A DNA stretch of 64,000 nucleotides from Saccharolobus islandicus REY15A (GCF_000189555.1 NC_017276.1), one strand, 5' to 3'; numbered from the stretch's first letter, positions 2,217 to 55,591 are shown. Notes: generated by a model from the sequence alone, not told the origin. Translations and numbers: made by a program.

Positions 2217-2277
2217 GAAAATAATTGCTAAAAGATTAGAGATCACTTTTTTATGACTAAGATATCTTTTTATTATT

Positions 2278-13880: not shown

Positions 13881-15160
13881 TAGTCTTTTTCATAATATCT
13901 GCAACGGGGGGCTAAAAGGGAGTTAAATCTAGTGTTAGTAATGGGAAGCTGTTGGGCTGAGCGTGCTGAGGACCTTAATTCGCTTTGAACCCAACAGCCC
14001 CCCAAGATATATTAGACAAAATGCACTATTAAAACTAAATGAGCGTGTTGAGGACCTTAAAAAGGGAGATAAGGAAGCTAATCAGCAAGAAGCCCAAGGG
14101 TTTAAACGAGACAAAAGCTAGGGCAATACTACTACACTTGGAGGGAATGAAAATTAACGAAATAGCAAAAATACTACAAGTACACCCAAGCACGGTTTAT
14201 AGATGGGTAAAAGAATTCGAAAAGGAAGGAGAGAAATGCCTATTCTACAAGCAGAGAAAAGGAAGGAACAAGAAAATAAACGAGAGGGAAATAAAGGTAG
14301 AAGAACTACAAGGAAAAACCATATGGGAAGCAAAGGCCTACATAGAAGAAAAGTTTAACGTGAAGATAAGCTACGTAACAGCTTGGAGAATAGCGAGAAA
14401 GAGGTTGAAAATTCCCTACATAAAACCATACAAGATCGACAAGAAGAGGCCAATAGATGCCGACAATATACTTAGGGAGAGGTTGAGGGGTGTTATTAAG
14501 AAGGGTGTAAAAGTGTTTTTCATGGATGAGTGTGGTATTCGTCATGATCCCTCTAGGGTTAGGAGGTTGGGTTTATATATTGTTAAGGCTGATTATCCAA
14601 GTGTTAATGTTCTAGCTTGTATTCCCTTGTTTGATGGTAAGCCTTGTTTTATGCCCACTTATTCCAATGTTGATTCTAGGGTCTTTGTTGAGTTTCTTTA
14701 CTTGCTTAGGGTTGGGAATTCTGGCAACATCGTGTTGATCCTTGATAATGCTAAGTTTCACAAGAATGCTTACGTTTTCTCTGTTGCTTCTCGGCTCAGT
14801 ATCACCTTGCTTTTCTTGCCTCCCTATTCTCCGGATTTAAATCTCATTGAGTTGGTTTGGAAGGACTTGAAGCGTTGGGTTAATACTTATTATCACTCGT
14901 GTTATGCTCTAGAGTTTATTGAGGATGAGTTCTATTATTTGGTTTCTAAGGGTAATTATACTAGGTATTGGATTAAGAAGTTTCATGACGTGCTTGAGGA
15001 AGGTATAAGTATGGAAAAATTTTTCTCATCTCTGTTTTCGTATCTGTTAACAAGTTTTATCAAGTTTTATCTCACAATAGTGCAAGCTTTTCTCAATGTT
15101 TTTCTATATTTTGTATTGAGGGAAGTTATAAGCCCGTTGAAGCTATTATGAAAAAGACTA
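13881..15160 (+). mobile_element. IS630-family element (1280 bp) with single-ORF transposase 14039-15151
   Basis: Perfect 16-bp TIRs TAGTCTTTTTCATAAT and ATTATGAAAAAGACTA, with TA on both flanks. Transposase has an HTH plus FMDECG, LDNAKFH and LPPYSPDLNLIE motifs. Confidence 0.92.
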
Positions 15161-15510
15161 TATAAGGTTGTTAATACTGGTATATAAAGATAACAGGCTG
15201 AACTTGTACGCCACTGACCTTAACTTGAGCGATGAGGAGATAGATGCAACTTGGAAGATTAGGTGGGAGATAGAGAAGTTACACAGGGACGTCAAGACCT
15301 TGGGTATGCAAGATTCCTCTTTCCTCAAGAGGAAGAGGCTTCAAGGTTATCTGCTCCTCTTTGTGATGGTGGTCAACGCGGCCAGAGACTTGGTCACGTC
15401 CCTTAACTTGAAGAGCGTGGAGGAACTTCTCCGGTTCGTTGAAATACGTTTAGAGGGTGCTCTGGGTTTGATGAAAATCTTTAAGCTGCGTTAAAGTAGA
15501 ACAACTGCTA
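15161..15510 (+). mobile_element. 3' fragment of the ISC1200-like element
   Basis: Near-identical to 911-1260 (few substitutions), including the right TIR at 15493-15510. The 5' part is missing. Confidence 0.9.
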
Positions 15511-20599: not shown

Positions 20600-21197
20600 G
20601 TAGGAGAGCTCTACCAACTTAAATACACCCCCTTGGTAATTGAAGAGATCAAAGTTCTAGCTAAAATACTGCTCGAAACGCAAGAGAGGTTAGGAAGATG
20701 ATTAAGGGGCAAGTACCAGATGACCACGTCTTATTAACAATTCCGGGTGTTGGGAGGCTTGCAGCTGGTATTATTATAGGTATTGTTGATGATATTAAGT
20801 GCTTTTCAAGGCCGAGTCCTTTGTAGCTTATTGTGGATTAGACCCTGTTGTGGAAAGAAGCGGTAGGGCTGTGATAAGTAAGGGAATTCCCAAGAGGAGT
20901 AATAGATACTTGCGTAACTTGTTTTATTTTCTTGCAGAGATAAATTACCATAGGCCCCAACCTTGCTGAAGTTCTACGAGTCCCACAAGGTTAAGCTTCA
21001 CAGTAGGAAATTGCACACTGCTTTGGCTAGAAAGTTGGCTAGGATTGTTTGGAGTGTTTGGTATAATAATAAGCCTTATGAGCCAAAGTGATTGAAGTTC
21101 CCTCCCCCGAATCGCCACGTGGGTTGAAAGGATCTACGTGGCAACCTTAGTTGACACTATGCTTGAAGTTTGACCGAAAGGTTTGTTACTGAACGCC
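20600..21197 (+). mobile_element. IS110-family remnant, second copy
   Basis: LLTIPGVGRLAAGII...FVAYCGLDPVVERSG with frameshifts. Stop at 21089-21091. The right end is homologous to 10736-10840. Confidence 0.85.
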
Positions 21198-22297: not shown

Positions 22298-22969
22298 TCA
22301 CAGAGATACATGAACACTCTCGCACATCTTAATAGCATTTTCAGCATCAAATTTTGAGTATAATTCTTCTGGTGTAGCTCCAGTTTCCTCATCTTCATAC
22401 ATCGCTGATTCTCTTTCACTCTTTAAAACTCTGGAATAGTATGCAAATTCATCTATTTTCTCTTGGAACCATTGTGGGAACCTAACTTTTTCTTTCCTAA
22501 GGAAATATCCAACGTCAACATCACTGTCCTTTCTATTATCTCCTCGAGCTACACTTCCGTAGACCACCACAGAAATCAGCCTATCCCCAAATTCTTCTAA
22601 CAGTAATTTAACTTAATTAGGGGTTAAGGGGGCGAAAGTCCCCTTCCGTAAGGTAGGGGATGAATAGCCCCCTTATAGAAACCTTTTTATTGCAAAAAAT
22701 AGATAATTCTTAGGCCTCGGCTGTAAGAGCTGGGCCGTACCCTTGGGACTGGGGGAACTTACGCCTGTGGAGAGCAACCCTCCGTAACCCCTCTTCCACA
22801 CGGGGCATTACAGAACGGTTCCGTTCGATGGAACCTCCGCTGTGGGTGAAGGGGGATCGAGGTTGCTCTGAGAAGCAGGAAATCCCCATCGTGAGGTGGA
22901 GATGCCCTGTCCGTAAGGGCGGGGTAGTTCACTGAGCTTTTCCAATAAACTCTTATAAGGCTCTTTCAC
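22298..22969 (-). pseudogene. Broken MNT-HEPN pair: MNT interrupted by SMN1 and fused by deletion to a HEPN tail
   Basis: Removing 22612-22932 restores MKEPYKSLLEKLIKLLLEEFGDRLISVVVYGSVARGDNRKDSDVDV. Downstream it reads a HEPN tail (ERESAMYEDEETGATPEELYSKFDAENA). Confidence 0.85.
22612..22932 (+). mobile_element. SMN1-type non-autonomous IS200/IS605-family element (321 bp)
   Basis: Exactly 321 bp, inserted 3' of TTTAA with no target duplication. Subterminal hairpins; right end GTAGTTCAC. A second copy lies at 54019-55554. Confidence 0.9.
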
Positions 22970-40144: not shown

Positions 40145-40741
40145 ATGGGAAAAGAAAAGAAAATTTTGGCATTTGACTTGTACGGTACAATTTTGGATCT
40201 ATCAGGGATTTCACAAGAAATGAGAAGGAAACAACTAGAGTATACTTGGCTATTAACCATAATGGGAAGATATGTGGATTTCGATGAGATAACCAAAATG
40301 GCAATAAGCTACATCCTAGGAGAGGATAAAATAGAGGAAGAATTGAATAAGTGGAGAAATCTAAGGGCACATCAAGATGCAATCTATTTAAAGGACATCT
40401 CCACAATATCTGATATTTACATTTTATCCAATGGTACGACTAAGGCTATAGAGGAACTTTTAAAACTTAATGGTTTGTCTAGCTATTTTAAAGGAATATT
40501 TAGCGCAGAAAGGGTAAAGGAATATAAACCCTCACCTAAGGTCTACAAATACTTCCTTGAGGCAGTTAATGGAGAGGCTTATCTGGTCTCATCAAATCCA
40601 TTTGATGTTATTGGTGCTAAGAATGGTGGAATGAAGAGCATATACGTTAATAGGAGAAATATGCCAGTTGACCCATTAGGTTATGAACCGGATATTGTGG
40701 TAAGGGATTTTAAGGAGTTATATGAATGGTTACAAAGGTGA
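40145..40741 (+). CDS. HAD-family hydrolase, haloacid dehalogenase type II-like
   Basis: FDLYGT, LSNG, YKP and SSNPFDVIGA motifs. Confidence 0.92.
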   Translation: MGKEKKILAFDLYGTILDLSGISQEMRRKQLEYTWLLTIMGRYVDFDEITKMAISYILGEDKIEEELNKWRNLRAHQDAIYLKDISTISDIYILSNGTTKAIEELLKLNGLSSYFKGIFSAERVKEYKPSPKVYKYFLEAVNGEAYLVSSNPFDVIGAKNGGMKSIYVNRRNMPVDPLGYEPDIVVRDFKELYEWLQR

Positions 40742-40752
40742 ACTACCACGCC

Positions 40753-41957
40753 CTAACGGACGTGGCTTCCTGCTTCACAGCCGAGGCTTGCCAAAGGTAG
40801 AGGTCTCAGCTCCACAGGCACTAAGGGTCGTTCCGACCCCGATCTACTCAGAATATTAAGAGAAGCATTATAATCACGATCTACAGTCCAACCGCAGGAA
40901 GGACAGACAAACACACGATCAGCCAAAGTCAAGTCCTTCTTAACGTAACCGCACCTAGCACAAATCATTGAAGTAAAAGCAGGATTAACAAAACGAATCT
41001 CCTTACCATACTTCCCAACTTGATACTCCATGATACTCCTAAACTCATGAAAAGCAACATCATGTAACCTCATCCTCAGCCTTCTGAGAGACTTACCAAC
41101 AATTTGCTTAACATGAATATCCTCCATTACGAGAACATCATAATGCTCAGCAAAATACTTCCCCAGTTTCATGTACATATCCATCCTCAGGTTCTTCAAG
41201 TACTCATAAGCCCTTGCAAGCTTAATCTTCGCCTTAAACCAGTTGTGTGACAAGAACTTCTTCCTTGAAAGAGCTTTATGAAGCCTCTTCATCTTGTTGA
41301 GTGCCTTCTCGTAAGGCCTCATGTTTGGCACGTATTCCCCGTCAGAGGTAGTGAGAAGTTTCTCTACACCAACGTCCACAGCAACAACTTTGTTTGTCTT
41401 GGGGAGTTGAGGATACTCTTGATCCACAACGAAAGTGATGTACAATCTGCCTGAAGGTGCCAGCTTGACTACTACCCTCTCCACTTTTTCCAGTTGGAAA
41501 TCCCTATGAACAACGACGTTGAAGATACCTAGGTTTGAAAGCTGAAGCGTCATTACCTTCTTCTTGTTCTTCTTGCTTTTCGTCCTTATTTCTCTCACCT
41601 TCATGACTTTCCAACCTGACTGAGGGTATACTAGTGAGTACCACTTGTGTGCTTTCTTTTCCTTGGGGAAGTGTGCTAACCCTTCGAAGAACCTCTGTCT
41701 AGCGTCGTAGAATCTGTCTGCGATCTGTTGTAGTGTTTGGGAATTAGATGTTGATATTGTTTATCCTGTTTTCTTAGATCGAGAGCTAGTTGTCTCAACT
41801 CCGTCTTAGTGAGTCCTTTTCCGTCTCTCTCATGAAAATAGATGTCTGCCCAACGTAGGGTGTTGTACACTTCACACGCTAACCTCAATTGGGCTTTTAA
41901 CGCCCTCAATGTTTGTTCGTCAGCGTAAGCTCTAAAGCGTAACCCTACGTCAGACAT
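40753..41957 (-). pseudogene. tnpB: Frameshifted TnpB RNA-guided nuclease
   Basis: N-terminal HTH ORF at 41676-41957 and RuvC/Zn-ribbon ORF at 40753-41604 (VAVDVG, VMEDI, CARCG, CPSCG, DRDYNA). Frameshift near 41750. Confidence 0.92.
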
Positions 41958-42018
41958 TAATAGAATATTTGAAAAAGAATTATTTAAATATAAGGGGGCT
42001 ATCCATCCCCTCCCTCAC

Positions 42019-43239
42019 CGGTAGACCCAAAATCATATTAGAAAAAATATTTCTGGTAGGATAATATCGAATTGATAAAAGATAAAGAAATTTATAAGAG
42101 TATAAAGAATTCAATTGAAGAAAGGGTTTAAGGTGAGGGAGATGGCGTATTACCACGTGACATAGGAAGATGGTAACACCAGGTCTCCCTCACCAAAATA
42201 ACATTCAACAAATAGGATATAAATTACTTTCCATGTTGAACTTCCAAGGGGAAAAGGTAGAGGAGGTAGCGAAAACTCTCATCTCCGCGTGTTTGTGGAA
42301 CGATTCAGTAGAGAACAAGTCCAGAGCGTATGACGTATCCCCACAGACCGTGAGGAATTACGTAGAGAAACAAGGGATGGAAGTGACTGAAAAGCTATTG
42401 GAAAGAGCTAGGAAAATATCCTTGGAGATATTAAAGGGAGTGAATGAGATAGATCTTTCAATAGACTGGACAACCAAGACATGGTACGGGAAACCAGTGA
42501 AAGGGCTCGGGAGCTCTGAAAAAGGAAACTCGTGGAACTACGCAACTGCAACAACCAAGTATAAGGGGAAAGTGCTTTTACTTGCCTTTATTCCGCAAGT
42601 GAACGGTATGACTAAGGACGAGATAGTGAAGGCTCTTGTTGAACAAGTAATGGCAATGGGATTCAAGATAAGGTTGATAACTCTTGACGCTGGTTTCTAT
42701 ACTGTTGACGTGCTCAACTTCATTTCACAGTTTAAGTACATAATTGCTGTTCCGGTTGGGGACGTGAAGGTGTACGAGGAGTTTGACGGGGATTACACAA
42801 CTAATAGTAAGAGGCATAGGAGGGATGAGCAGGTCAAGTTCAGGCTTCTCGTGTACAGCAAGGAAAAAGTGGGGAGAAAGAAGAAGAGCCTTGTTTACTT
42901 CGCTAGGGCTACTAACCTAGACCTATCCAAGAGGGAAGTGTTGGATTTGTACAATAAGGTAAGAGGTCCCATAGAGACCTCTTATAGGAACATTAAGGCT
43001 TTTCTTCCATTTACTAGTTCTACTAAGTTTGTTTTCCGCACGTTGATCTTCGTGCTGGCCCTTGTACTCTACTCCTTATATACCATATTCAAGGGGGAGG
43101 TGGGGAGAGAGGAGTTTAGATTATTATTAATTCTTTTATTTCCTGATTTATTCAATCCAGAGAATTTTACATTTAATGTAATTGAAACGCTTATTTATAC
43201 TATAGATTTATTTTTAAGGAGGTGATTTTGGGTCTACCG
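42019..43239 (+). mobile_element. ISH3-family IS, ISC1225-like (1221 bp), intact transposase 42170-43225
   Basis: TIRs CGGTAGACCCAAAATC and GATTTTGGGTCTACCG, 4-bp duplication TCAC. Transposase has SIDWT, TLDAGFY and RGPIETSYR motifs. Confidence 0.92.
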
Positions 43240-43281
43240 TCACGGAAGGGGTCTTTCACCCCCTTTGAACCCCTTGTTAAG

Positions 43282-44007
43282 ATAAAAACACTATTTTCAG
43301 ATTACTTAAACTATGGAGGATTTCCGCTAGTAGTATCTAACGATAATGAGAGAGACAAGGAGAAAATACTGTTACAATTACAATTGTATGAAGACATAAT
43401 GCTCAAAGACGTAATCAGTGAATGCAATATAAGGAATGAGGAAGAGGCTAAAAACTTAGCCTTATTTTACATCTCAAATGCAGGAAATAAGGTACGTTAT
43501 AGAAAAATCTCTTACTCTTTAAATATTCCCTTGACTAATGTTCTGAGATTCACTGAGTGCATGCAAAACGCTTATTTGATTTTCTTCGTGAAAGCCTTAA
43601 GCCCAAAGTTGAGCGAAATGGTAAGATATGATAGGAAGGTGTATAGTATCGATAATGGTATTTCTAATGTTTTAGGATATAGGCTAAATCAGAACGTTGG
43701 TAGCTTGTTTGAAAATCTAATATTCCTAGAGCTCTTGAGGAGATATGGGATTAACAATGTCTTTTATTATAAGGGGAGAAGAGGCGAAGTAGACTTAGTC
43801 GTGAAAGTAAAGGATGAAATAAGGGAAATATATCAAGTAACTTATGAGCTAAGTGATATAGAGAGGGAAATAAAAGGTATTGAGGAGTTTCTAAAGATTA
43901 GAAAGACAAAGGCTTACATTATAACTTTTGATAACGAGGGAGAGATAGAACTTAACGATAACGTGGTGAAAGTAGTTAAAGCTTGGAAATGGCTATTGAT
44001 GGAATAA
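43282..44007 (+). pseudogene. C-terminal half of an AAA_14/DUF4143-type ATPase
   Basis: YGGFP, RKVYSIDNG, LFENLIF and EVDLVV motifs; no Walker A or B. The predicted ORF start at 43222 lies inside IS sequence. Confidence 0.85.
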
Positions 44008-44793
44008 CTTCTCTAACAACACAACCCTCTTCAGATGAAGATGTAAGTCTAGGTCTGCAGTAAATCCTATTCCTCCGTGAGATTGAATTGAGTTAAGAAT
44101 CGTTTTGAAAGCTTTCTTATACGCGTGTTTAAATATTCTTATTGGATCTGTTGGATTAGCCAAATACCTAGACCTAACCAATTCTATTCCTAAAGCATCG
44201 TCAACAATCCTATGTTTTATTGCTTGGTAAGATCCAATTGGCTTACCAAATGCAATCCTATTTTTAGAATACTCAACAGTCTCCTTAAGCACGGCTGTTG
44301 CATGACCTATAATTTGAGCCGAGGCAAGTAAAATCACTTTATTAAAATCAACATCTGATTGTCTCCACTTGCCTTCATTTATCTTATAAGCTCTCACTGA
44401 AGGATCTGGTGACTCTATTTCTTCAACACTTACATCATTTTTATTTGAAATCCCCTTTGGTGTAACAATGACTTCAGCCTTATCAACTTCAGCAACATAA
44501 TTAACACCAACACTTACGGGATAATCAACCCCTAACATTGAGCTAAAAGCGATTATTCCCGGCAATAAGTTCTCACCTATAATCTCGTTTATCAACAAGG
44601 CATTTGTTAGGCTGGTTTCTTTAATAAATTGGAAGATACCTAAATCCTTAACCTTGCTGAACGTTTCCATAATTTTATCTCTACTAACCTCATGTTTCTT
44701 AGCTCCATACTTACTCCATTCTCTGACTAAGAACTCACCAAATGAGTTTTTAACCAGTTCTAAGTCCTCATTCGTCTCAACATCTAAAATCAA
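43993..44793 (-). CDS. Short acyl-CoA dehydrogenase (probable non-catalytic partner subunit)
   Basis: RIAFGKPIGSYQAIKH and QSHGGIGFT motifs with a shortened N-terminal domain. Confidence 0.85.
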   Translation of the reverse strand: MILDVETNEDLELVKNSFGEFLVREWSKYGAKKHEVSRDKIMETFSKVKDLGIFQFIKETSLTNALLINEIIGENLLPGIIAFSSMLGVDYPVSVGVNYVAEVDKAEVIVTPKGISNKNDVSVEEIESPDPSVRAYKINEGKWRQSDVDFNKVILLASAQIIGHATAVLKETVEYSKNRIAFGKPIGSYQAIKHRIVDDALGIELVRSRYLANPTDPIRIFKHAYKKAFKTILNSIQSHGGIGFTADLDLHLHLKRVVLLEKLFHQ

Positions 44794-44838
44794 TTAACCT
44801 TCACCACAATTTATGATTAAGAATAAAGGTTTAAATTA

Positions 44839-45480
44839 CTATACTAAAAAGTTAGGAGAACTAACACCGTGCGAAACGTAAACCATTGATGGATTAAATG
44901 ACTTTATCTTCTCAACGCTTTTCATTAGCTCATCAAAGTCTTCATAGATGTTAGGATATTTTAATCCTTTCTTATCACCTTGCAAAGTATCACCAACTAT
45001 TATAGCGTTCAATTCCGGCAAGTAAATTGAAACGGAATCATTAGTATGACCGGAAGTCTTAATTATTTCGACACCCTTTACGAATTCACCTTCCTCTAGA
45101 ACAAAGTCAACATTCACACCGTTGAATTTTCTAAAGAGGAAAGGTTTTCCAATTGAGAAAATAACCTTAAGCGCAGAAGAATGTAGAACTGGTTCCCTTA
45201 TTTTACCGTTCTTTAAATAATCAACACCGTTCTTATCAATTCCAAACTTAACGTCATTAACAAACCTTTTTACTTCGTAAGCCCCTCCAATATGATCTGT
45301 GTGGGAATGAGTAAATATTATGCTTTTTATCTTGTTAGGATTCTTCCCAAGACTAGTTATACCCTCGATGATCCTTCTCCCACTACCCGGAGTACCACTA
45401 TCAATTAGGATCAATCCATTCTCGTTAGTCTCTATTAAAAATACCTTAACGAAACTTAGAGGAATCTCAAAAACTTTCAT
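44839..45480 (-). CDS. Metallo-beta-lactamase-fold hydrolase
   Basis: [17 protein letters not shown] and SHG motifs. Confidence 0.92.
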
Positions 45481-45586
45481 AAGAGATAATTAGTTAGTTA
45501 ATAGCTAATATAAATAGCGTCAGATTTTTCAGCAAGGAAAGCATTTCGAACCCTACTAATTTAATTTTTCTCTTACGTCCATTTAA

Positions 45587-45946
45587 ATGATGGCAAAGTG
45601 GTTTGAGAAGAGTGAGAGAGAAAGGGTGGTAGCACTTCTTCTTTTCAATAAAGGCTACTATCCTGAGGCATGTTTTCACAGTCATATGGCTGTTGAACTT
45701 AAATTTAAGGGACTTTTAGTTCAACAAACTGGTGCTGTACTTTATACTCACTCGTTGAAGCGCCTTTTACAAGAGCTTGAAAAAATTAAAGACATAAAAG
45801 TGAGCAATGAGATATTAGATTGTGCAAATTATCTTACGATGCTATATACAAGCTCTAGATATCCAGAAGAAAGCCTTATTGACTTGGGCAAAGAAGAGGG
45901 TGAGAAGTGTGTCAAATGCATGGAAAAATTACTCTCTCTATTCTGA
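45587..45946 (+). CDS. HEPN domain protein (pair 4)
   Basis: ACFHSHMAVELKFKG, THSL and YTSSRYPE motifs. Confidence 0.9.
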   Translation: MMAKWFEKSERERVVALLLFNKGYYPEACFHSHMAVELKFKGLLVQQTGAVLYTHSLKRLLQELEKIKDIKVSNEILDCANYLTMLYTSSRYPEESLIDLGKEEGEKCVKCMEKLLSLF

Positions 45947-45950
45947 CCTA

Positions 45951-46322
45951 ATGGAGATTTACAAGGAAGAGGAAATGGAGGCTAAGGAATACATATCATC
46001 GATTTGTAAAAAAGAATACACTGTTATCCTCTTTGGCTCTAGGGCTAGGGGTGACAACAAAGTTTACAGTGATTGGGATATCTTAGTTATAGGGAAAGAG
46101 AAACCCCCATTACCACCCTCATCAGTGGATTTACATTATGTTAACGTTGATGAAATTGAGGAGAAGATTATGGAGTTCAATACGATTTTTATTGACGCCT
46201 TTTACGAGGGTAAGCTTCTGTGCGATAATCTTTCGACGTATCAAAAAATAAGAGGGAAAGTGTTAGAGAGAATCAAGGGATATAAAAAGACCAGAGAAGG
46301 ATGGTTTAGAGAAAACGATTAG
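45951..46322 (+). CDS. Minimal nucleotidyltransferase (pair 4)
   Basis: LFGSRARGD...SDWDIL motif. The ATG at 45951, just after the HEPN stop, is a likelier start than 45822. Confidence 0.88.
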   Translation: MEIYKEEEMEAKEYISSICKKEYTVILFGSRARGDNKVYSDWDILVIGKEKPPLPPSSVDLHYVNVDEIEEKIMEFNTIFIDAFYEGKLLCDNLSTYQKIRGKVLERIKGYKKTREGWFREND

Positions 46323-46949
46323 TGTTTTGTTAGGGGGATCTCGAAATATTTAAGAACTTCAGCTTTTACCTCATTTTCTTTGGCTATTATATCCAGTTCC
46401 GTTGAAAACTTGATGTTTTTGAACCTCAGGAATTCCTTGAAGGAGAAAAGGAAAAACTTCTAATACTAAATGCCTACCAGCTAATACTTCTCTAACATTC
46501 TTGTTATTTATCGATGCCGTCGAACCAGAAATAACTACATTAGCTTCTTTTCTATCTACTAATGATCTAACAAAACCCTCCCATCCCTTGACCTTCTGAA
46601 TTTCATCTAGAAAGATGTAAGGTCTACTATCTTTTTTCTTTCTTATCTCCTTGTACAATTGGTATAATGAAAACAGATCGTTAGCAGTCCTTATGTCGCC
46701 AAAGCGGGAGTCCTCAAAGTTGACTATTAAAGTATTGAATGGATCTTCTCCCTTGTCAATCAGTTTCTTAACAATCTGATTAATAATTGTTGACTTCCCA
46801 GATCTTTTTACACCAATAACTGATATCACAAAACCCTTACCTAATAAACTTAACAATTGATTAGAATAATCTCTTTCAATATCAATAAATTGGTTCTTAT
46901 ACCAGAAATTCCAGTCTATTAAGGCCTTTAACACTAATTCCCTATGCAC
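46320..46949 (-). pseudogene. N-terminal half of an AAA_14-type ATPase, frameshifted and truncated
   Basis: GVKRSGKS, FLDEIQ and LAGR motifs. Frameshift at FPF, then FKEFL...EVLKYFE, ending before YGGFP. Confidence 0.85.
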
Positions 46950-46979
46950 TAAGAAAATTTATGGTTAAATGTAAATAAG

Positions 46980-47036
46980 TTTGATCCATACTACGAATCA
47001 ATTTTATGTAATTTTGATCCTTCATATGGATCAAAA
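46980..47036. promoter_or_regulatory. Inverted-repeat operator-like site upstream of the ATPase
   Basis: TTTTGATCC-N7-GGATCAAAA (47012-47036) plus an extra half-site TTTGATCCATA at 46980-46990. Confidence 0.45.
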
Positions 47037-47176
47037 CAAACGAGAATAAGCCAGTTATAACATAGTACATTTAAGGATAATTTTCTCTATATGTAAATCT
47101 TATTAATTATAAATGATTCGAATGTGACGAGTTATAACAAAAGCTTAACTTGTTCTTTCGTCTTTTCATTCATTCT

Positions 47177-47611
47177 TTAACTTCTCTTACTGCACAATAT
47201 TTCCATTTTTAACGTCATTACTTCCTCTCCCAATTGATTTAGCGTCCTTATTGTCAAATACACCCTACCACCCTTCTCTCTCTCCTTCTTGTCGGTAACC
47301 TCAACCACTGTCCTTAATGTATCTCCTATTTTTACCGGTTTCTTAGCATCCATCTCTAATTTAGTTAGAGCTACAAAACCCTCACCAAAAGGATCTGAAG
47401 GTAGTTGATAAGTTAAGCCGACTGCAATTGAAGCCGTCAACAAACCTGGTATTATTCTACCCTTAAATCTGGTCTTTTTACCGTACTCCTCATCTAAAAA
47501 AAGTGGATTGAGTGCACCAGTTATTCCAGTAAAAATTACAACATCTGCATCAGTTATAGTCCTTCCCTTACTCTCCCACTTTTGGCCGACTTGAAAATCT
47601 TCGAAGAACAT
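47177..47611 (-). CDS. MaoC-family (R)-specific enoyl-CoA hydratase/dehydratase
   Basis: MFFEDFQVGQ...RTITDADV..F.G.TG..NP motif. Likely start at 47611. Confidence 0.88.
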   Translation of the reverse strand: MFFEDFQVGQKWESKGRTITDADVVIFTGITGALNPLFLDEEYGKKTRFKGRIIPGLLTASIAVGLTYQLPSDPFGEGFVALTKLEMDAKKPVKIGDTLRTVVEVTDKKEREKGGRVYLTIRTLNQLGEEVMTLKMEILCSKRS

Positions 47612-47639
47612 ATTATAAGAAAAGAGAAACGCAATATAA

Positions 47640-48731
47640 TTATTTCGGAAGTTTAAGAGCTCTCTCACCTATGACATTTCTAAGAATCTCTGAAGTACCA
47701 CCAGCTATTGTTCTACCCCTAGAAGCTAGCATACCTAAATACCACTTCTCTTTCATTACCGTCTCCAAATCATAATTTGCCACTGCAATTTCATATATCC
47801 TCTGCAATAATTCTGATGCCAAGAGCTTCAACATAGAACCCTCTACGTCTATATCCTCTCCTCTCCTTAGCTTTACTAAAATTCTCCTATAAAAGGCCTC
47901 TAGACCTTCAACCTCATCCTCCAACTCCTCTCTCTCCCTTACGCCTTTCAAACTCTCTAAGGATATCTTCGACGTAAATAACATTGTAACTCCCAACATG
48001 AACCTCTCATGATTTAAAACTGTCATTGCAACCTTCCAACCATCACCCACGTTACCTATAATGTTCTCCTTAGGAACCTTTACATTGTTGAAATACACCG
48101 TGTTAAAGTCACTCTTTCCCGTTAGTTGACTTATGGGGGATACTCTGATTCCATCTTGCTTCATGTTAAGTATGAACATTGTTAAGCCCTTATACTTATC
48201 CTCACCAGTTCTCGCTAATAGTATCATATAATCGGCAATGTGAGCATAACTACTCCAAATCTTCTGCCCATTTACTAAAAAGTAATCGCCCTTATCCTCA
48301 GCTCTAGTAGTCGCTGAAGCCAAATCTGAACCGGCTTGAGGTTCAGAAAAACCTTGGCACCATATATCCTCAGCTCTTAATATTCTAGGTAGATACTTTC
48401 TTTTCTGCTCTTCATTTCCATGCTTTAAAATTGCAGGAGCTACTACCATCAAACCAATTGAACCTAAGCTTCTGCCATATGGTAATCCTGCCCTTATGAA
48501 TTCCTCATAGGCAATCACTTCGTAAATTGGATCTAAACCTTGTCCACCATATTCCTTAGGCCAAGTTATTCCTAAATATCCGGCATCAGCCAATTTCCTT
48601 TGCCAAGACCTTAACTCATTATAATCATCAAATTCTACTGTCTCAAATAGAATTTTTCTTCCCTTTAACGACTCTGGAGCGTTATTTTTTATCCATTCCC
48701 TTAACTTTAACCTATACTCCTCTTCATTCAC
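47640..48731 (-). CDS. Acyl-CoA dehydrogenase
   Basis: WCQGFSEPQAGSDLAS, NGQKIWSS and TIAGGTSEILRN motifs. Confidence 0.95.
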   Translation of the reverse strand: MNEEEYRLKLREWIKNNAPESLKGRKILFETVEFDDYNELRSWQRKLADAGYLGITWPKEYGGQGLDPIYEVIAYEEFIRAGLPYGRSLGSIGLMVVAPAILKHGNEEQKRKYLPRILRAEDIWCQGFSEPQAGSDLASATTRAEDKGDYFLVNGQKIWSSYAHIADYMILLARTGEDKYKGLTMFILNMKQDGIRVSPISQLTGKSDFNTVYFNNVKVPKENIIGNVGDGWKVAMTVLNHERFMLGVTMLFTSKISLESLKGVREREELEDEVEGLEAFYRRILVKLRRGEDIDVEGSMLKLLASELLQRIYEIAVANYDLETVMKEKWYLGMLASRGRTIAGGTSEILRNVIGERALKLPK

Positions 48732-48764
48732 AGATAAAAAATTAGTAATTATAAAATAAAAAAT

Positions 48765-48817
48765 TGCTCAGCCGAAGGGCTATCGTCACAGATCGGCTGA
48801 AACACGGCTCATCACGC
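48765..48817 (-). ncRNA. Box C/D methylation-guide sRNA
   Basis: The minus strand reads GTGATGA-gccgtgtttcag-CCGA-tc-TGTGACGA-tagcccttcgg-CTGA: boxes C, D', C' and D with 11-12 nt guides, about 52 nt in total. Confidence 0.8.
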
Positions 48818-50041
48818 TACACTTAGTCTAACATCCTTGACCAAAGCATATGGGTAAATCCCTTGCATTGGGGCGTCCCACCATCTCACAGAGTACCTTT
48901 CTCTAGATAACTGTACTATATTCTTTAAAATCTTCTTCAAATTATCAGCTATCCTTACTCTGCCCACTACTCCAACAGGATTACCGTTCCTATAAACTAC
49001 AGTGGCATCTCTAGCAACTGTTGAGAAATCGCCCTCAGCATAGTTTTGGAATCTGGTATACCATACATTGTTTATGAAAACTACATTACCGGAAAGCAGT
49101 GATTCAAATCTAGTATCACCCTCCTTAACCTCTAAATTCCACGCTGTTGGGTATATCCATCCCGCATTACCGGTACTAGGCAATTTGAAGACGGTGGATA
49201 GTTCGTTATTTAGTAAAGGAGTTGTAAATACTCCATTTTCAATTATAGCCTTGTTATAGGTAAACGTACCTTCATCATCAAATCCCCACGAGTTAGGTCT
49301 ATCCTCCTTAGGAGTGTCTAATAAGGTAAACTTATCTGATCCCGCCTTTTCTCCAGGCTTCAACATCGACATCCCAGACATTATAGCGTAGCCGGAAGCC
49401 ATCCTTGCAACACTCTCCATTAAATTACCCATTACTAAAGGAGAGAGAATCACGTCATATTTACCTTCGGAAATCTCGTATTTGCCAGTAATTGATGCCA
49501 ACTCATTAGCTTTCTTTATACTATCCTTAACTTGAGATGGGGAGAAATTAGTAGAAGAAAAAGCCCATTGTCCGCTATGTTCCCTATTCTTAGCCCTAAA
49601 GTAACCGCTTATGCTTTGATTGTTTTCCGTTCCGTTGAATCCCTTAGATGTAACCAAGGATCTTTCCATATCATCTATTGATATTATACCGTAAAGGGGA
49701 TATTCCGACTCTATGAGAGATAAAAGAGGTGATAAATCGTCAAATAGTGATATAATGTTAGTGTTATTCCTAACCATTTTGTATTCTCTCTCATTTTTAC
49801 TCATAATAGGAAAGAAGTCTACTGGGGTTAGTTTAGGTTTCTCATTTAAATTACTTATCCTACCCAAGAACCCTTGGCTATCCTTCTTTAACGCTAGGAA
49901 ATAGTAACTGTTAGTCATTCTCTGTATTGTAGCTACCTTACTCTCAACTAGCTTAATGATTATCCTCCTTGTCTTCACTCTCAATAGTCCTACTTCTTCT
50001 CCCTTTACTTCTTGCACGTATTTTACCATTTCCTCATTCAT
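48812..50041 (-). CDS. tldE: TldE/PmbA-family protein
   Basis: FDDEG motif, no HExxH, overlaps tldD. Confidence 0.88.
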   Translation of the reverse strand: MNEEMVKYVQEVKGEEVGLLRVKTRRIIIKLVESKVATIQRMTNSYYFLALKKDSQGFLGRISNLNEKPKLTPVDFFPIMSKNEREYKMVRNNTNIISLFDDLSPLLSLIESEYPLYGIISIDDMERSLVTSKGFNGTENNQSISGYFRAKNREHSGQWAFSSTNFSPSQVKDSIKKANELASITGKYEISEGKYDVILSPLVMGNLMESVARMASGYAIMSGMSMLKPGEKAGSDKFTLLDTPKEDRPNSWGFDDEGTFTYNKAIIENGVFTTPLLNNELSTVFKLPSTGNAGWIYPTAWNLEVKEGDTRFESLLSGNVVFINNVWYTRFQNYAEGDFSTVARDATVVYRNGNPVGVVGRVRIADNLKKILKNIVQLSRERYSVRWWDAPMQGIYPYALVKDVRLSVA

Positions 50042-51410
50042 TTCCCATCACCTTAATTCTAACATTTCTCAATCTCATATTAGGCCCACCTAGCCAAACG
50101 GGTATACCTTGATCCGGATCACCCTTGCCACAAGTACCTGGATAAAATACTAAAGTATTATCAACTGCATCAACTGCCTTTAACAATTCAGTAGTCTTCC
50201 CTTGAAAAACCGGGAATAGTACTGGATCACCAATCTTTCCGTTCTTAATCTCATAAGCTTCCAACCCAACATATCGTTGACCTAGTCTCATATCATCAAT
50301 ATTCCATTCCATGTAACTCTTTATATAAACGCCTTCCTTGACGTCTTCCAAAAGCTCATCAAAGGTCATGTTACCAGGTTTAAAGAAAGTATTAGACATT
50401 CTAATTAAAGGTTCCCTATCGAAATTCGCAGCCCTGGCCGAGCCATTACTCTTAACGTTAAATTTACTACTACTAAACCTATTTTGTAAATATTCGTTAA
50501 CCTTACCATCCTTAATTAAGTATTTAGGTCTAGCTTCAACACCCTCATCGTCTATTATGTAATAACCGCCACTGTTCGGTATTGTAGGATCATCTATAAC
50601 AGTAACGACATCGCTACCTATCCTGTTATCCTTCAATTCAGCTAGATAACTCAAACCAGCTTGGGCGAATTCCCTACCCAAAACTCTATCGGCCTCAAAT
50701 GGATGCCCAACAGATTCATGAGCCATTATGCCTGTTAACATATTACTCAAAACTACATCAGTAGTCCGCTCACCAAAGCTCTTACCCTTAGCCAAGACCT
50801 CAGTAACAGATCTAACTTTATCCACTACGACCTCATTCAAATTCATCCTCTCTAATACTTCCAGCCCACCACTTCCTCCAAGTTCGTAAAATGCAGTAGC
50901 CGTCCTATTGTTCTCGTTAAGGACTAAATTCATTCCTACGTAAAGCCTAGGAACCCTTCCAACTATATGTGATCCATTAACTATGATCTCCTTTTCCTCA
51001 ATACTTTCGTCATAGAAAAATGAAACGCTCTTAAGTGAACGAAAGTCCTTTACAGCTTCATATAGGTTCTTAAAGAAGCTTATCTTCTCGTCAATTGACA
51101 TGAGATCAAAAGGTTTACCCTCTTTAACCTCATAACTACCCTCCTTAGGTTCAGTATTATCTAAACCGCTCTCCCACCCCTCTATTTTATACTCCTTGTT
51201 GCTGCTCAGTAGATCATTGGGATTATTTGATGAAGCAAAATATAACACGCCATCCTTGTAATACCTAACTGAATAGCCATCATCTGTAAACCTAAACGAT
51301 CCCATTAATCTGCCATTAAGAAAAGACATCCCAAACGTCGATACGATATGTCTTCTAACCTCCACGTAAGGGTATCTGAACTTATCGTAAAGAGATTGCA
51401 GATCTGTCAT
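50034..51410 (-). CDS. tldD: TldD-family metalloprotease
   Basis: HESVGHPFEADR, RMSNT and CGKG motifs. Confidence 0.93.
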   Translation of the reverse strand: MTDLQSLYDKFRYPYVEVRRHIVSTFGMSFLNGRLMGSFRFTDDGYSVRYYKDGVLYFASSNNPNDLLSSNKEYKIEGWESGLDNTEPKEGSYEVKEGKPFDLMSIDEKISFFKNLYEAVKDFRSLKSVSFFYDESIEEKEIIVNGSHIVGRVPRLYVGMNLVLNENNRTATAFYELGGSGGLEVLERMNLNEVVVDKVRSVTEVLAKGKSFGERTTDVVLSNMLTGIMAHESVGHPFEADRVLGREFAQAGLSYLAELKDNRIGSDVVTVIDDPTIPNSGGYYIIDDEGVEARPKYLIKDGKVNEYLQNRFSSSKFNVKSNGSARAANFDREPLIRMSNTFFKPGNMTFDELLEDVKEGVYIKSYMEWNIDDMRLGQRYVGLEAYEIKNGKIGDPVLFPVFQGKTTELLKAVDAVDNTLVFYPGTCGKGDPDQGIPVWLGGPNMRLRNVRIKVMGNE

Positions 51411-51548
51411 ATTATGATATGATTTTAGTCAAATAAAAAGATTGCTAACTCCAACTTCATCTTTATATTAATACTTTCTTCTATTCTGACTTTTTCCCCG
51501 CCTTTGATGCACGAAGCTTTCAGTAGTAAATATCTCACTACAGCATTT

Positions 51549-52613
51549 TTAGGCGTTTTTCCTTTCTTCCAATACTCTACTCAATTCCTTCTCAAAGTTC
51601 TCCTTTAGCTCTTTAAGTGTAATTGACCACTTATTGTCCTTTGTGAAGTGTTCGTAAGGTATTGAATACGTTCTAACTAAATCCCTTAAAGGTGTAATTG
51701 GGTGGACGTAAATTTCATATGAAACGTGATATGCTGAAGATAGTTTATTAATGAACTCCATGATATCAAGCAACATATGTTTTTGCCCAACAATAAATGC
51801 GTAAATCTTATCGTTATGCAAATAAGATATTCTTAAAAGCGTTGCAATCCTACTCAACTCCCTAACAATATCCTCACTAGTATCGTTTACGATCAACGAC
51901 ATTCTAAAGTCAGTCTTACCTAAATAAGTGTAAAACGCGTCAACTAAACCCTTACCAACAACGTGATTAAAATAATGATCTACCACTTCATCTGATGTTA
52001 CACCTATAGATTCTGCTATCTCATCCCACGACCTTAAAGGATTCTCTTGTTTCTTTCCAAGTGTATAAATGTCGATCCAGTCCGGCTTAAAACTATCAGT
52101 CAAATCAGGCAACTGAAACGGTTCTCTAGGCTTATCTAGTATAGCCCTTTCAAAAGTCAAAGTATCGAAATTAAAAGTTGAATAGTCAACTGGATAAACC
52201 TCCCTCCTATACTCCAGGTAAGTCTTATAATTACCAATTAATCCCCTCTCGCTCATCATTTCTAAAATTTGAACAAAATCCCACCTACCTTTAGGAAATA
52301 CAACATCCAGAATTATGGTATCGCTAGTCAAAACGTCCTTCAATGATGCAACCACCGTACCGTCAAGTAGATAATAAAAATCTAAAGGTTTAACCTTAAA
52401 ATTCCTTGTCAACTTAATAGTAGTATGAAAGAGCGATAATCCTAAAGAATCAAGTTTGGGAGACGAAATAACCAATACTTTAAGATTAGATAAGACATTC
52501 CTAACGTTTTCTATCCCAGTTAACTCACTCAGTAACTCGTGATTATGATCACCAAACCTCTGAACGTAATGCAATAATTTCGTAAGTTTTTGTATAACAG
52601 TAGAATCGATCAT
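51549..52613 (-). CDS. Putative transcription regulator with internal AsnC-like wHTH (tandem wHTH/effector-domain architecture inferred)
   Basis: DWIDIYTLGKKQENPLRSWDEIAESIGVTSDEVVDHY resembles an Lrp/AsnC HTH. The start at 52613 sits about 26 bp from a TATA-like TTTTATAT. Confidence 0.55.
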   Translation of the reverse strand: MIDSTVIQKLTKLLHYVQRFGDHNHELLSELTGIENVRNVLSNLKVLVISSPKLDSLGLSLFHTTIKLTRNFKVKPLDFYYLLDGTVVASLKDVLTSDTIILDVVFPKGRWDFVQILEMMSERGLIGNYKTYLEYRREVYPVDYSTFNFDTLTFERAILDKPREPFQLPDLTDSFKPDWIDIYTLGKKQENPLRSWDEIAESIGVTSDEVVDHYFNHVVGKGLVDAFYTYLGKTDFRMSLIVNDTSEDIVRELSRIATLLRISYLHNDKIYAFIVGQKHMLLDIMEFINKLSSAYHVSYEIYVHPITPLRDLVRTYSIPYEHFTKDNKWSITLKELKENFEKELSRVLEERKNA

Positions 52614-52683
52614 ACTCAACATAATAAGTAGTGAGAACATATAAAAATAGTATCTTCAAAATTCTAAAAAGAATTTAACGTAT

Positions 52684-52824
52684 CTAAACAGTACCTGGTG
52701 CTATTGATTCTCCAGCGTGTGTTACATGTAGTGCTGCAAGGATTAATGGTAGGGAAGCTGCTGCTATTATTATTGCATACCTTACTACTTGACTTGAGGC
52801 TAACGTGTACATGTTTACTCTCAT
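52684..52824 (-). CDS. 46-aa signal-peptide-like small ORF (not in ORF track)
   Basis: MRVNMYTLASSQVVRYAIIIAAASLPLILAALHVTHAGESIAPGTV*. Has basic, hydrophobic and T-H-A cleavage regions, an upstream TATA-like ATATTTAT and a downstream T-rich tract. Confidence 0.65.
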   Translation of the reverse strand: MRVNMYTLASSQVVRYAIIIAAASLPLILAALHVTHAGESIAPGTV

Positions 52825-53131
52825 TTTTGGTCAATAGTCACAAACGTGAGGGCTCCAATAAATATGAGTATTTGAATGAAATAGATTTATTGGAAATTGA
52901 GAGTTTACACTAAAATCAAAATAATAAAAAGTTTATAGCTTTAAGATCTCACATATAAGCAAATAGTTAACGAGAAACTGAACTATGAGGCCGGTATTAT
53001 GGAAAACAAGAATGGCTCACAGAAAAATTTTAAAAAATAATTTTTGTTGTAAAATCTCTATCTTAAATTATTAATTTCGCTTTTTGGAATTTAAATTTTT
53101 CCTTTTATACATAAGCTTCATCGTCTTATGA

Positions 53132-53929
53132 TTAAACCTTTATTACTCTTCTCGTCATTGGTATCTCTTTAACTAACTCTATAGGCTTTTGTTCTATTAT
53201 ATCGACCTCGTACACTGCAGTAGTGGAGTAAATTACCTTTCTCTCATCCTTTTTAGCTATTGCTGTTACACCAAATGTGGGTCTTGGCAACTTTACACTT
53301 ACCTTATCCCAACTAATCCCATTATCTCTAGAAATTATTAAGGGCTCTTGACTCATTATATGGGCTACAACTATTCTTCCTAGATCTTCCAATCCGTGAG
53401 CGTAACCACCTATCACTTTATTAAAACTTTTCATATCTATAGTTTTGTAAATTCCATTCGCTGTTGCTATTAATAGATTCTCACCACTAACTAAAAGGTT
53501 ATGCATGTCTGCGAAGAAGTCTATGGGCTTTAATTCACTTATGGACTTTCCCACTAATAAGTTCCCTTCTTCAACAGTGGCAACTATGTAATCTTTAAAT
53601 AGTGCGAAATCTGTTATGTGTGCTGGGCCATAGGGAAATTCCCAGCCTAATTTTTCTGCCTCTTTTGTTAAATTTAGTATTTCTTTTACTTTTCTGTCCC
53701 TGATTTCATATATTTTAGGTCCCTCAATTGAAGCGTAGATTGTATTGTCATACTCCCATAATCTCCAACATCCTTCGTTTATTATTGCCTCGTTGTTTTT
53801 CGAGATTACTCCTTTCTCAGATGAGCAAATATAGGGTAAGACCACATCGTTAACCTCATAGCCTTCTGTTAATTTCTCCAATTCCTTGTCTAACTTGTAT
53901 AATCCATTGTTAGTTGCAATGAGATACAT
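53132..53929 (-). CDS. Beta-propeller-like protein (BNR/Asp-box-like motif)
   Basis: Repeated LLIATANGIYK-type blades and an SRDNGISW Asp-box. Confidence 0.6.
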   Translation of the reverse strand: MYLIATNNGLYKLDKELEKLTEGYEVNDVVLPYICSSEKGVISKNNEAIINEGCWRLWEYDNTIYASIEGPKIYEIRDRKVKEILNLTKEAEKLGWEFPYGPAHITDFALFKDYIVATVEEGNLLVGKSISELKPIDFFADMHNLLVSGENLLIATANGIYKTIDMKSFNKVIGGYAHGLEDLGRIVVAHIMSQEPLIISRDNGISWDKVSVKLPRPTFGVTAIAKKDERKVIYSTTAVYEVDIIEQKPIELVKEIPMTRRVIKV

Positions 53930-54018
53930 AATATCTTTTATGATTAGAAGTTTAAAATCATTACTAATTATAATAACAAGGAATTCGGATAGAAGACAGA
54001 GAACAGGTAGTTTGATTA

Positions 54019-55554
54019 GTGAACTACCCCGCCCTTACCCGGTAGACCCAAAATCACCTCCTTAAAAATAAATCTATAGTATAAATAAGCGTTTCAATTA
54101 CATTAAATGTAAAATTCTCTGGATTGAATAAATCAGGAAATAAAAGAATTAATAATAATCTAAACTCCTCTCTCCCCACCTCCCCCTTGAATATGGTATA
54201 TAAGGAGTAGAGTACAAGGGCCAGCACGAAGATCAACGTGCGGAAAACAAACTTAGTAGAACTAGTAAATGGAAGAAAAGCCTTAATGTTCCTATAAGAG
54301 GTCTCTATGGGACCTCTTACCTTATTGTACAAATCCAACACTTCCCTCTTGGATAGGTCTAGGTTAGTAGCCCTAGCGAAGTAAACAAGACTCTTCTTCT
54401 TTCTCCCCACTTTTTCCTTGCTGTACACGAGAAGCCTGAACTTGACCTGCTCATCCCTCCTATGCCTCTTACTATTAGTTGTGTAATCCCCGTCAAACTC
54501 CTCGTACACCTTCACGTCCCCAACCGGAACAGCAATTATGTACTTAAACTGTGAAATGAAGTTGAGCACGTCAACAGTATAGAAACCAGCGTCAAGAGTT
54601 ATCAACCTTATCTTGAATCCCATTACTTGTTCAACAAGAGCCTTCACTATCTCGTCCTTAGTCATACCGTTCACTTGCGGAATAAAGGCAAGTAAAAGCA
54701 CTTTCCCCTTATACTTGGTTGTTGCAGTTGCGTAGTTCCACGAGTTTCCTTTTTCAGAGCTCCCGAGCCCTTTCACTGGTTTCCCATACCACGTCTTGGT
54801 TGTCCAGTCTATTGAGAGATCTATCTCATTCACTCCCTTTAATATCTCCAAGGATATTTTCCTAGCTCTTTCCAATAGCTTTTCAGTCACTTCCATCCCT
54901 TGTTTCTCTACGTAATTCCTCACGGTCTGTGGGGATACGTCATACGCTCTGGACTTGTTCTCTACTGAATCGTTCCACAAACACGCGGAGATGAGAGTTT
55001 TCGCTACCTCCTCTACCTTTTCCCCTTGGAAGTTTAGCATGGAAAGTAATTTATATCCTATTTGTTGAATTTTGGTGAGGGAGACTTGGTGTTACCATCT
55101 TCCTATGTCACGTGGTAATACTCCATCTCCCTCACCTTAAACCCTTTCTTCAATTGAATTCTTTATACTCTTATAAATTTCTTTATCTTTTATAAATTCG
55201 ATATTATCCTACCAGAAATATTTTTTCTAATATGATTTTGGGTCTACCGTTACGGACAGGGCATCTCCACCTCACGATGGGGATTTCCTGCTTCTCAGAG
55301 CAACCTCGATCCCCCTTCACCCACAGCGGAGGTTCCATCGAACGGAACCGTTCTGTAATGCCCCGTGTGGAAGAGGGGTTACGGAGGGTTGCTCTCCACA
55401 GGCGTAAGTTCCCCCAGTCCCAAGGGTACGGCCCAGCTCTTACAGCCGAGGCCTAAGAATTATCTATTTTTTGCAATAAAAAGGTTTCTATAAGGGGGCT
55501 ATTCATCCCCTACCTTACGGAAGGGGACTTTCGCCCCCTTAACCCCTAATTAAG
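54019..55554 (-). mobile_element. Second SMN1-type element, split by an ISC1225-type IS in its right-end hairpin
   Basis: 54019-54038 plus 55254-55554 are the reverse complement of 22612-22932. It follows TTTAA on the minus strand. Confidence 0.9.
54040..55249 (-). mobile_element. ISC1225-like IS, second copy (1210 bp), with lesions
   Basis: Same TIRs as the copy at 42019. TTAC duplication with one extra C on the left. A 5-bp deletion near the transposase start and a 6-bp in-frame deletion relative to that copy. Confidence 0.92.
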
Positions 55555-55591
55555 TTAAATGTTTTTATCCTTGAGCGAGATTATTATCATT

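Follow-up and report, generated by a model that had tools for sequence, protein, structure and literature searches.

Several bacterial insertion sequences (ISs) insert selectively into repetitive extragenic palindromic (REP) sequences, among them IS1397/ISKpn1, ISPa11, ISPpu9, ISPpu10, ISPsy8 and ISRm19/22 (Tobes & Pareja 2006, PMC1525189), and REPs themselves resemble the subterminal hairpins of IS200/IS605 transposons and are handled by related Y1 transposases (PMC3333891). These REP-targeting ISs are the closest parallel to the elements described here, two archaeal IS copies of the ISC1225 group (ISH3 family) that lie within terminal hairpins of IS200/IS605-type elements in a 64,000-nucleotide stretch of the genome of Saccharolobus islandicus REY15A (GCF_000189555.1, NC_017276.1), hereafter called the window. 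Symmetric targets occur elsewhere: IS231A of the IS4 family reportedly inserts into the terminal inverted repeats of Tn4430, with the consensus GGG(N)5CCC, and IS10/Tn10 has a symmetric target consensus. ISH3 elements drive the expansion of ISs in Saccharolobus, and a 2026 survey of the neighbourhoods of ISH3 elements in S. solfataricus covers the functions of adjacent genes only (PMC13343696); no insertion preference of ISH3/ISC1225 elements was found in the searchable literature. Comparison of 104 unique IS ends indicates that the site preference is real and conserved, beyond coincidence, and ISs of the ISC1225 group most probably have an intrinsic preference for a C-rich palindromic target, and hence for the hairpins at IS605-type ends.

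Two ISC1225-group copies in the window

A repeat search of the window identified a 1.2-kb sequence that is present twice in inverted orientation (copies A and B). The 17-mer IS end TGATTTTGGGTCTACCG (perfect 17-bp ends CGGTAGACCCAAAATCA) occurs exactly four times in the window, versus 0.12 occurrences expected, and the search with this 17-mer found no IS ends there beyond the four of copies A and B.

42019..43239, + strand: IS copy A (ISH3 family, ISC1225 group), 1221 bp, with perfect 17-bp terminal inverted repeats
42170-43225, + strand: transposase open reading frame (ORF) of copy A, intact, 351 amino acids (aa), with an N-terminal DUF4322 domain and a DDE_Tnp_1 domain
54040..55249, - strand: IS copy B, 1210 bp, frame broken, remaining ORF 54054-55040

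The transposase of copy A, encoded at a single locus (CP002425.1:908670-912725 in GCA_000189555.1), matches the NCBIfam model transpos_ISH3 (NF033541, 304.9 bits, cut-off 225) and the Pfam families DDE_Tnp_1 (28.9 bits, cut-off 23) and DUF4322 (137.8 bits), and judged from its sequence it has a DDE-type catalytic domain. It shares 76% identity with 'Transposase ISC1225' of S. solfataricus, and its near-identical relatives carry either that name or 'ISH3 family transposase'. The label 'ISC1225-type' that was used in a preliminary description of the window is therefore fair, because of the ISH3 model match and this identity. Target duplications of 4-5 bp are a trait of the ISH3 family, to which the IS is assigned by the curated model, the inverted repeats and the short duplication. 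Relative to copy A, copy B has nine substitutions and lacks 6 nt in frame and, near codon 10, 5 nt whose absence breaks the frame; it is probably non-autonomous.

Copy A is situated just upstream of a tnpB gene (- strand), and it occupies the left-end hairpin of the tnpB element with a duplication of TCAC, as had been described: the junctions read ...TATAAGGGGGCTATCCATCCCCTCCC TCAC-IS-TCAC GGAAGGGGTCTTTCACCCCC..., with TCAC on both sides between the arms of the hairpin. When the site is rejoined, an 8-bp stem with a 4-nt loop is predicted on the tnpB-sense strand (-6.7 kcal/mol; none of 200 shuffled sequences folds as well).

42007..42014, + strand: left-end hairpin arm CCCCTCCC of the tnpB element; partner arm GGAAGGGG at 43244-43251
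42015..42018, + strand: left TCAC duplication of copy A, which is the loop of the left-end hairpin; right copy at 43240-43243
40738..43275, - strand: IS200/IS605-family tnpB-only element, host of copy A, with boundaries drawn from SMN1 (see below) and from left ends elsewhere

The left end of this host element spans copy A up to approximately position 43275, where it adjoins TTAAC. Its tnpB, the only one in the window, is frameshifted (41957-41676 and 41604-40753, ORFs of 93 aa and 283 aa) and matches OrfB_IS605 and Cas12f1-like_TNB of Pfam and guided_TnpB of NCBIfam (203 bits, cut-off 100); no tnpA is present within the window. Downstream of tnpB, the right end (CCACGTCC GTTA GGGCGTGG TAGTTCAC) contains a hairpin at 40746-40765 that is empty. 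An ORF with a DUF4143 domain only (43222-44007, + strand) starts exactly at the left-end boundary of the tnpB element, and looks like an ATPase gene of which the 5' end was cut off by insertion of that element.

Copy B interrupts a different kind of host. SMN1 is said to have been described by Berkner and Lipps in 2007 as an ORF-less S. islandicus element of ~320 bp with IS200/IS605-like ends. Two 328-bp elements of the window match it in size, and are named SMN1 here by size and by description in S. islandicus, where SMN1 (~320 bp) is mobilised by the ISC1733 transposase (PMC3718332). Both are without an ORF; their left end is of the IS605 type, and their interior and right end are omega-RNA-like. 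Their flanks are unrelated, and neither has a target duplication.

54019..55560, - strand: SMN1 copy 2, split by copy B in its right-end hairpin, with arms at 54027-34 and 55254-61
54035..54039, + strand: left TTAC duplication of copy B (54035-54038) followed by an extra C (54039); right TTAC at 55250-55253
22606..22933, + strand: SMN1 copy 1, intact, which acts as the empty site for copy B

The junctions of copy B read ...GTGAACTACCCCGCCC TTAC C-IS-TTAC GGACAGGGCATC..., with CCCCGCCC immediately before TTAC C and GGACAGGG immediately after the right TTAC. With the IS, one TTAC and the extra C removed, SMN1 copy 2 is 100% identical to SMN1 copy 1 over 328 bp, and the duplication of copy B is therefore the 4-nt loop of the right-end hairpin CCCTGTCC GTAA GGGCGGGG. 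The empty site thus bears out the placement of copy B in the right-end hairpin of SMN1 with a duplication of TTAC, but the extra C at 54039 had been overlooked. The counterpart of this hairpin in SMN1 copy 1 (22905-22924) is empty, as are the left-end hairpins of copy 1 (CCCCTTCC GTAA GGTAGGGG, 22640-22659) and of copy 2 (55507-55526). Both host elements are on the - strand and the IS copies are on opposite strands, in agreement with the earlier statement that the target is used in opposite orientations.

Target motif of the ISC1225 group

Flanks were collected from a genome scan (11 loci from Stygiolobus, Metallosphaera, Acidianus and a Sulfolobaceae, with no Saccharolobus among them), from a metagenome scan with the 17-mer IS end (120 more loci), and from complete-genome copies added through exact-protein look-ups. 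Ends were retained if their inner 60 nt were at least 70% identical to the IS ends of the window; 30 of the 142 matches to the 17-mer, part of them chance matches and part divergent relatives or indel-bearing copies, were set aside. The remaining 112 genuine ends yielded 88 unique flanks including those of the window, and 104 after the complete-genome copies were added.

The extraction of flanks and construction of a target logo that had been proposed thus recovered recurrent C-rich inverted half-sites: positions -12 to -5 read C C Y C S C C Y (0.3-0.8 bits each), and T and A stand at -4 and -1, respectively. The logo is the same on both sides of the IS, and the target is therefore an inverted repeat of which the 5' arm is C-rich on both strands, with the IS at its centre. 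A C-rich 8-mer (at least five C) is present at 69 of the 104 unique ends, and an 8-mer with at least five G at none. The loops that were used vary (TCAC, TTAC, TTCA, TAAA, TAGA, TTTA, CTCTG). Although the preliminary description had put forward CCTYAC^GGA as the shared target, it is the C-rich stem (CCYCSCCY on both strands) that is the conserved determinant, whereas the loop varies; the 9-mer CCTYACGGA has three further sites in the window (22645, 22910 and 55513), all in SMN1 hairpins. Two other candidates were discarded: the loop sequence as determinant, the loop being the least conserved part, and the C-rich flanks as part of the IS, since intact hairpins occur as empty sites.

A half-site matrix built from 84 non-window flanks was used to scan the window with both IS copies excised. 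Among ~123,000 (position, spacer) candidates, the occupied sites ranked first (tied with the right end of SMN1 copy 1) and third, and ranks 1-6 are exactly the six hairpins at the left and right ends of the tnpB element and of both SMN1 copies.

Insertions in IS605-type ends and elsewhere

Recognisable left-end or right-end hairpins of the IS605 family account for 43 of the 104 unique ends (41%, by conservative motif matching and with class assignments partly corrected by hand, which tells against too exact a reading of the figure). With approximately six such hairpins per 62.5 kb of the window as background, this over-representation has a binomial p of ~1e-143. The 3' part of an ISC1217-type transposase gene contributes nine further ends, in the hairpin TTCCTCTTTCC TCAA GAGGAAGAGG and its variants. 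Among the 52 unclassified flanks, 24 score above the 99th percentile of the background, versus 0.5 expected (Mann-Whitney p = 6e-25, with the matrix trained on the IS605 class). The suggestion that ISC1225 targets IS605-family ends thus holds as a strong preference, evident also in the two-ended copies below, but not as an exclusive one, given the ISC1217 gene and the sites at loci L142 and L149. Orientation relative to the host element is unbiased (16:22, p = 0.42), as expected for a symmetric site.

The flanks of the IS605 class fall into recurrent types. Left-end outer flanks consist of TTAC-AAAGAAAGGGGTTAAGGGGGCGGAAAGCCTCGCC.. followed by the loop; right-end outer flanks are the reverse complement of either ..GGGCGGGGTAGTTCAC or ..GGGCGGGGAGGAAGTCAG, the latter marking the right end of tnpB elements and of their derivatives without an ORF (tnpB adjoins it in L139 and L147); inner flanks are the matching inner halves of the left-end and right-end hairpins. 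The consensus is CCCCTTCC-GTRA-GGKAGGGG for the left-end hairpin of the host elements and CCMYGTCC-GTWA-GGGCGKGG for the right-end hairpin. At many loci the left end is preceded by TTAC, TCAC or TTAAC, and the host elements fit the IS200/IS605 family, with no terminal inverted repeats, similar subterminal hairpins, a TTAC-like target and no duplication. Free versions of the target hairpins are present in the loci, such as TTAC-AGAGAGGGGTTTAAGGGGGCGTAAAGCCTCGCCC TTCA GGGCGAGGAGGAAGTCAG in L022, with a perfect 8-bp stem (-9.8 kcal/mol).

Mini elements of ~58 nt are also frequent targets. They join the outer part of a left end, through a single perfect 8-bp hairpin, to the tail of a right end (..AGGAAGTCAG), with TTAC before each, and look like minimal IS200/IS605 derivatives; they are free at L022:3587-3645 and L091:5627-5685, and occupied in L148, L077, L084 and L001. 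In the window itself, the 3' part of an ISC1217-type transposase gene (PF04693) is present as two fragments (911-1210 and 15161-15460), each with an empty predicted target hairpin TTCCTCTTTCC TCAA GAGGAAGAGG; the second abuts an IS630-like DDE_3 transposase gene (14039-15151) in a nested IS structure.

Two-ended copies

Approximately 10 of 15 independent two-ended copies from complete genomes, those of the window included, are located in end hairpins of the IS605 family, and relatives at 56-69% identity are among them. The copies from outside the window are as follows.

L136, S. islandicus CP001400.1: left-end hairpin CCCCTTCC / GGGAGGGG, the site of copy A; duplication GTGA
L137, S. islandicus: left-end hairpin with a 5-nt loop; duplication CTCTG
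L138, S. islandicus: SMN1-type right end, the site of copy B, without the extra base; duplication TTAC
L150, S. solfataricus: right-end loop with two ISC1225 copies head-to-tail; duplication TTTA (three times)
L144, S. tokodaii (ISSto14): left end; duplication TTCA
L147, S. tengchongensis, 56%-identity relative: left end of a tnpB element; duplication TAAA
L148, S. tengchongensis, 56%-identity relative: ~58-nt mini element; duplication TTAA
L140, S. islandicus: hairpin of the ISC1217 gene; duplication TCAA
L142, S. islandicus: AMP-binding gene; duplication CGTA
L139, S. islandicus: AT-rich site; duplication uncertain (TTAA, one base out of register)
L149, Sulfolobus sp. S-194, 48%-identity relative: CRISPR spacer; duplication GTTT
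L141, S. islandicus: outer halves, a left end on one side and a right end on the other; no duplication (GTGA / GTAA)

The ISs of L136 and L138 are a 69%-identity relative with a different inverted repeat (CGGTACTCCC), so that two IS subgroups have arrived independently at the same left-end site (copy A and L136) and at the same right-end site (copy B and L138). Duplications are of 4 bp for copies A and B, L136, L138, L140, L142, L144, L147, L148 and L150, and of 5 bp for L134 and L137. The length of the duplication tracks that of the loop, with 4 bp at 4-nt loops and 5 bp at 5-nt loops (L137, and flanks with TTCCA/TGGAA).

Three of these loci have structures of their own. In L150 (LT549890.1:2681279-2688373, positions 1656-4109), the order is ..GCTCCCTCC TTTA-IS-TTTA-IS-TTTA GGAGGGGGTAGCTCAC, and the tandem represents either renewed insertion into the duplicated loop or an IS dimer. 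In L141 (AHJR01000001.1, positions 1053-2264), the IS lies between the outer half of a left end, ..CCCCTTCC GTGA, and the outer half of a right end, GTAA GGGCGGGGTAGTTCAC; an SMN1-like element seems to have lost its interior through a deletion between two IS copies, which is the structure expected from recombination between copies in both ends of one element. In L149 (CP035730.1:217174-220602, IS at approximately 1076-2244), the IS is inside a CRISPR spacer (repeat CTTTTAGTTTCTTTTTGTTTTTAC), with no hairpin target.

Proposed mechanism

The target would be an imperfect palindrome of two inverted 8-mers CCYCSCCY, each reading 5' to 3' toward the centre, with a 4-5 bp spacer that is often T..A. 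On each strand, strand transfer would take place directly 3' of the C-rich 8-mer, and because both transfers fall there, the spacer, which corresponds to the loop of the hairpin, would become duplicated. Such a symmetric site would admit the IS in either orientation. In the Sulfolobales, this motif would essentially coincide with the subterminal stem-loops of TnpB/IS200-IS605 ends and of their ORF-less derivatives (SMN1 and the ~58-nt mini elements), which would be the reason why IS605-type ends gather most of the insertions. Copy A in a left end and copy B in a right end would be unexceptional instances of this.

IS4-superfamily elements have symmetric target consensus sequences, and the transposase or transpososome of the ISC1225 group would read the two half-sites as sequence rather than as an extruded hairpin. 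Reading as sequence is favoured because a hairpin of opposite polarity is unused and because single half-sites can suffice (L142 and L149); recognition of structure alone appears less likely, but extrusion of the hairpin may contribute.

Several observations weigh against this interpretation or limit it. Nine of the 15 two-ended copies from draft genomes and metagenomes have no duplication, and re-pairing of their flanks gave no resolution; the flanks of at least L007 and L141 derive from two different targets. Inter-copy recombination or misassembly is the likely source of the copies without duplication, and some of them must be one or the other because in L007 a left end is fused to coding sequence of ISC1217. 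The sites of L139, L142, L149, L019, L063 and L086 have a single good half-site at most. Copy B has its extra base between the duplicated loop and the right inverted repeat (IRR) end, and an extra C is also found at an IRR-end junction in the unrelated metagenome locus L020. A duplication that follows the length of the loop fits recognition of duplex or of hairpin alike, and these Sulfolobus hairpins are only putative binding sites of TnpA.

Alternative explanations

A transposase specific for structure would recognise extruded cruciforms or hairpins of single-stranded DNA, such as form on the lagging strand when IS200/IS605 ends fold there, and IS605-type ends would be favoured as the stable hairpins of the genome. 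The duplication equals the loop whether this is of 4 or 5 nt, the targets fold as 8-9-bp stems that only 0-9 of 200 shuffled sequences match, and the hairpins fold better on the tnpB-sense strand, where there are G.T pairs in place of the A.C of the complement, a bias in keeping with hairpins that serve IS200/IS605 elements as single-strand signals. This explanation is nevertheless improbable: the same left ends contain a hairpin of opposite polarity (GGGGGCGAAAGTCCCC, -5.8 kcal/mol) that is never used, G-rich flanks being absent from all 104 ends, insertions occur at lone half-sites without a partner arm (L142 and L149), and the arms of several used 'hairpins' are mismatched.

Near-random insertion with persistence only in dispensable DNA, such as the ends of dead transposons, would account for the many targets that are other mobile elements (IS605-type ends and the ISC1217 gene) and for a host element of copy A that was already a pseudogene. 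It is very hard to reconcile with the choice of the same nucleotide of a 4-5-nt loop across different elements, species and IS subgroups, with the presence of the motif at non-transposon sites as well, and with a blind matrix that finds the occupied sites within 62 kb of mostly non-essential variable region, and it deserves little credence. Spread by TnpA of a composite formed when an IS once entered an IS605-derived element, as might be read from the junction GCCTCGCCTCTCTG-IS that stands beside at least six different outer flanks with TTAC or TCAC before each, is just as remote, since the IS is in both orientations at that junction, the left-end sequences of these copies differ among themselves, the insertions have duplications of their own in the left and right ends and in the mini elements of several subfamilies, and a split hairpin should, from what is known of IS608, be no substrate for TnpA.

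Possible consequences for the host elements

TnpA of IS608 and ISDra2 binds the subterminal hairpins, of which the right-end one also belongs to the omega-RNA. By analogy, and from the similarity of the left and right hairpins, the end hairpins of Sulfolobus are putative TnpA binding sites. Insertion of an ISC1225-group element would split the hairpin that the Y1 transposase TnpA requires, and at a right end it would also part the omega-RNA scaffold from the element end and the guide, disabling the host element; by comparison with the studied systems, a 1.2-kb insert in the loop should block both TnpA binding and omega-RNA function. The right-end hairpin is listed among the features of omega-RNAs (PMC12558985). 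A search of Rfam found no omega-RNA family over the right ends of SMN1 or tnpB. Destruction of guide RNA is only potential in the window because the tnpB of the host of copy A is already broken and SMN1 is without tnpB. To the cell, insertion into other mobile DNA would be harmless, which would favour retention of the IS and might provide the safe harbour that the preliminary description suggested.

A stronger proposal is that the ISC1225 group are dedicated hyperparasites of TnpB/IS200-IS605 elements, which recognise the stem-loop bound by TnpA, maybe in folded form and perhaps via the uncharacterised domain DUF4322, and which by splitting it block excision by TnpA and uncouple the right-end omega-RNA from its guide. 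We consider this rather unlikely; if true, the expansion of ISH3 elements in Saccharolobus would actively curb the activity of TnpB elements, as a form of transposon-versus-transposon warfare, and the group would possess a naturally evolved hairpin-targeting DDE transposase.

The preference for a C-rich palindrome has implications of its own. It amounts to a defined and compact rule for the targets (CCYCSCCY, 4-5 bp, RGGSGRGG) of an abundant group of archaeal ISs, with TnpB/IS200-IS605 ends and their miniatures as sinks for another transposon, and helps to explain nested and chimeric ISs and deletions like that of L141 in the variable regions of Sulfolobales. It bears on the number of TnpB/omega-RNA loci that are still functional. 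Such a DDE transposase, whose preferred palindrome is 20 bp long and whose host is a genetically tractable thermophile, is also a possible tool for targeted insertion.

Other features of the window

The window also contains the following features.

10427-10840 and 20783-21197: direct repeat of ~400 nt, 90-98% identical, 10.36 kb apart
48766-48819, - strand: C/D box small RNA sR9 (Rfam RF01312, 43.1 bits, gathering score 36)

Comparison with known systems

The nearest relatives of the window element are ISC1225 of S. solfataricus and ISSto14 of S. tokodaii, with transposases 76-82% identical, the same first 16 bp of the inverted repeat and a length of 1.2 kb. They share the same kind of target (a right end in L150 and a left end in L144, respectively), and the window element is an S. 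islandicus variant.

IS231A likewise has a transposase of the DDE_Tnp_1 type and a symmetric target with G/C triplets, of which the best natural instance is the end of another transposon. The polarity of the ISC1225 target is CCC...GGG, in contrast to the GGG...CCC of IS231A, and its duplication is of 4-5 bp rather than 9-12 bp; the two ISs belong to different families and domains of life, and the element targeted by ISC1225 is a single-strand (HUH) transposon.

Like the REP-targeting ISs, ISC1225 is autonomous and highly selective for a short GC-rich palindromic repeat, within which it inserts. Most of its insertions have a fixed position in a repeated palindrome of which free copies are present, and it thus belongs with the REP-recognising ISs as a functional, not a phylogenetic, class. 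Unlike those ISs, ISC1225 is archaeal and has an ISH3 DDE transposase, being neither an IS3 element nor an IS110 element with an RNA-guided recombinase, and its targets are not domesticated REPs but bona fide TnpB/IS200-IS605 ends and their miniatures, of which the loop becomes the duplication.

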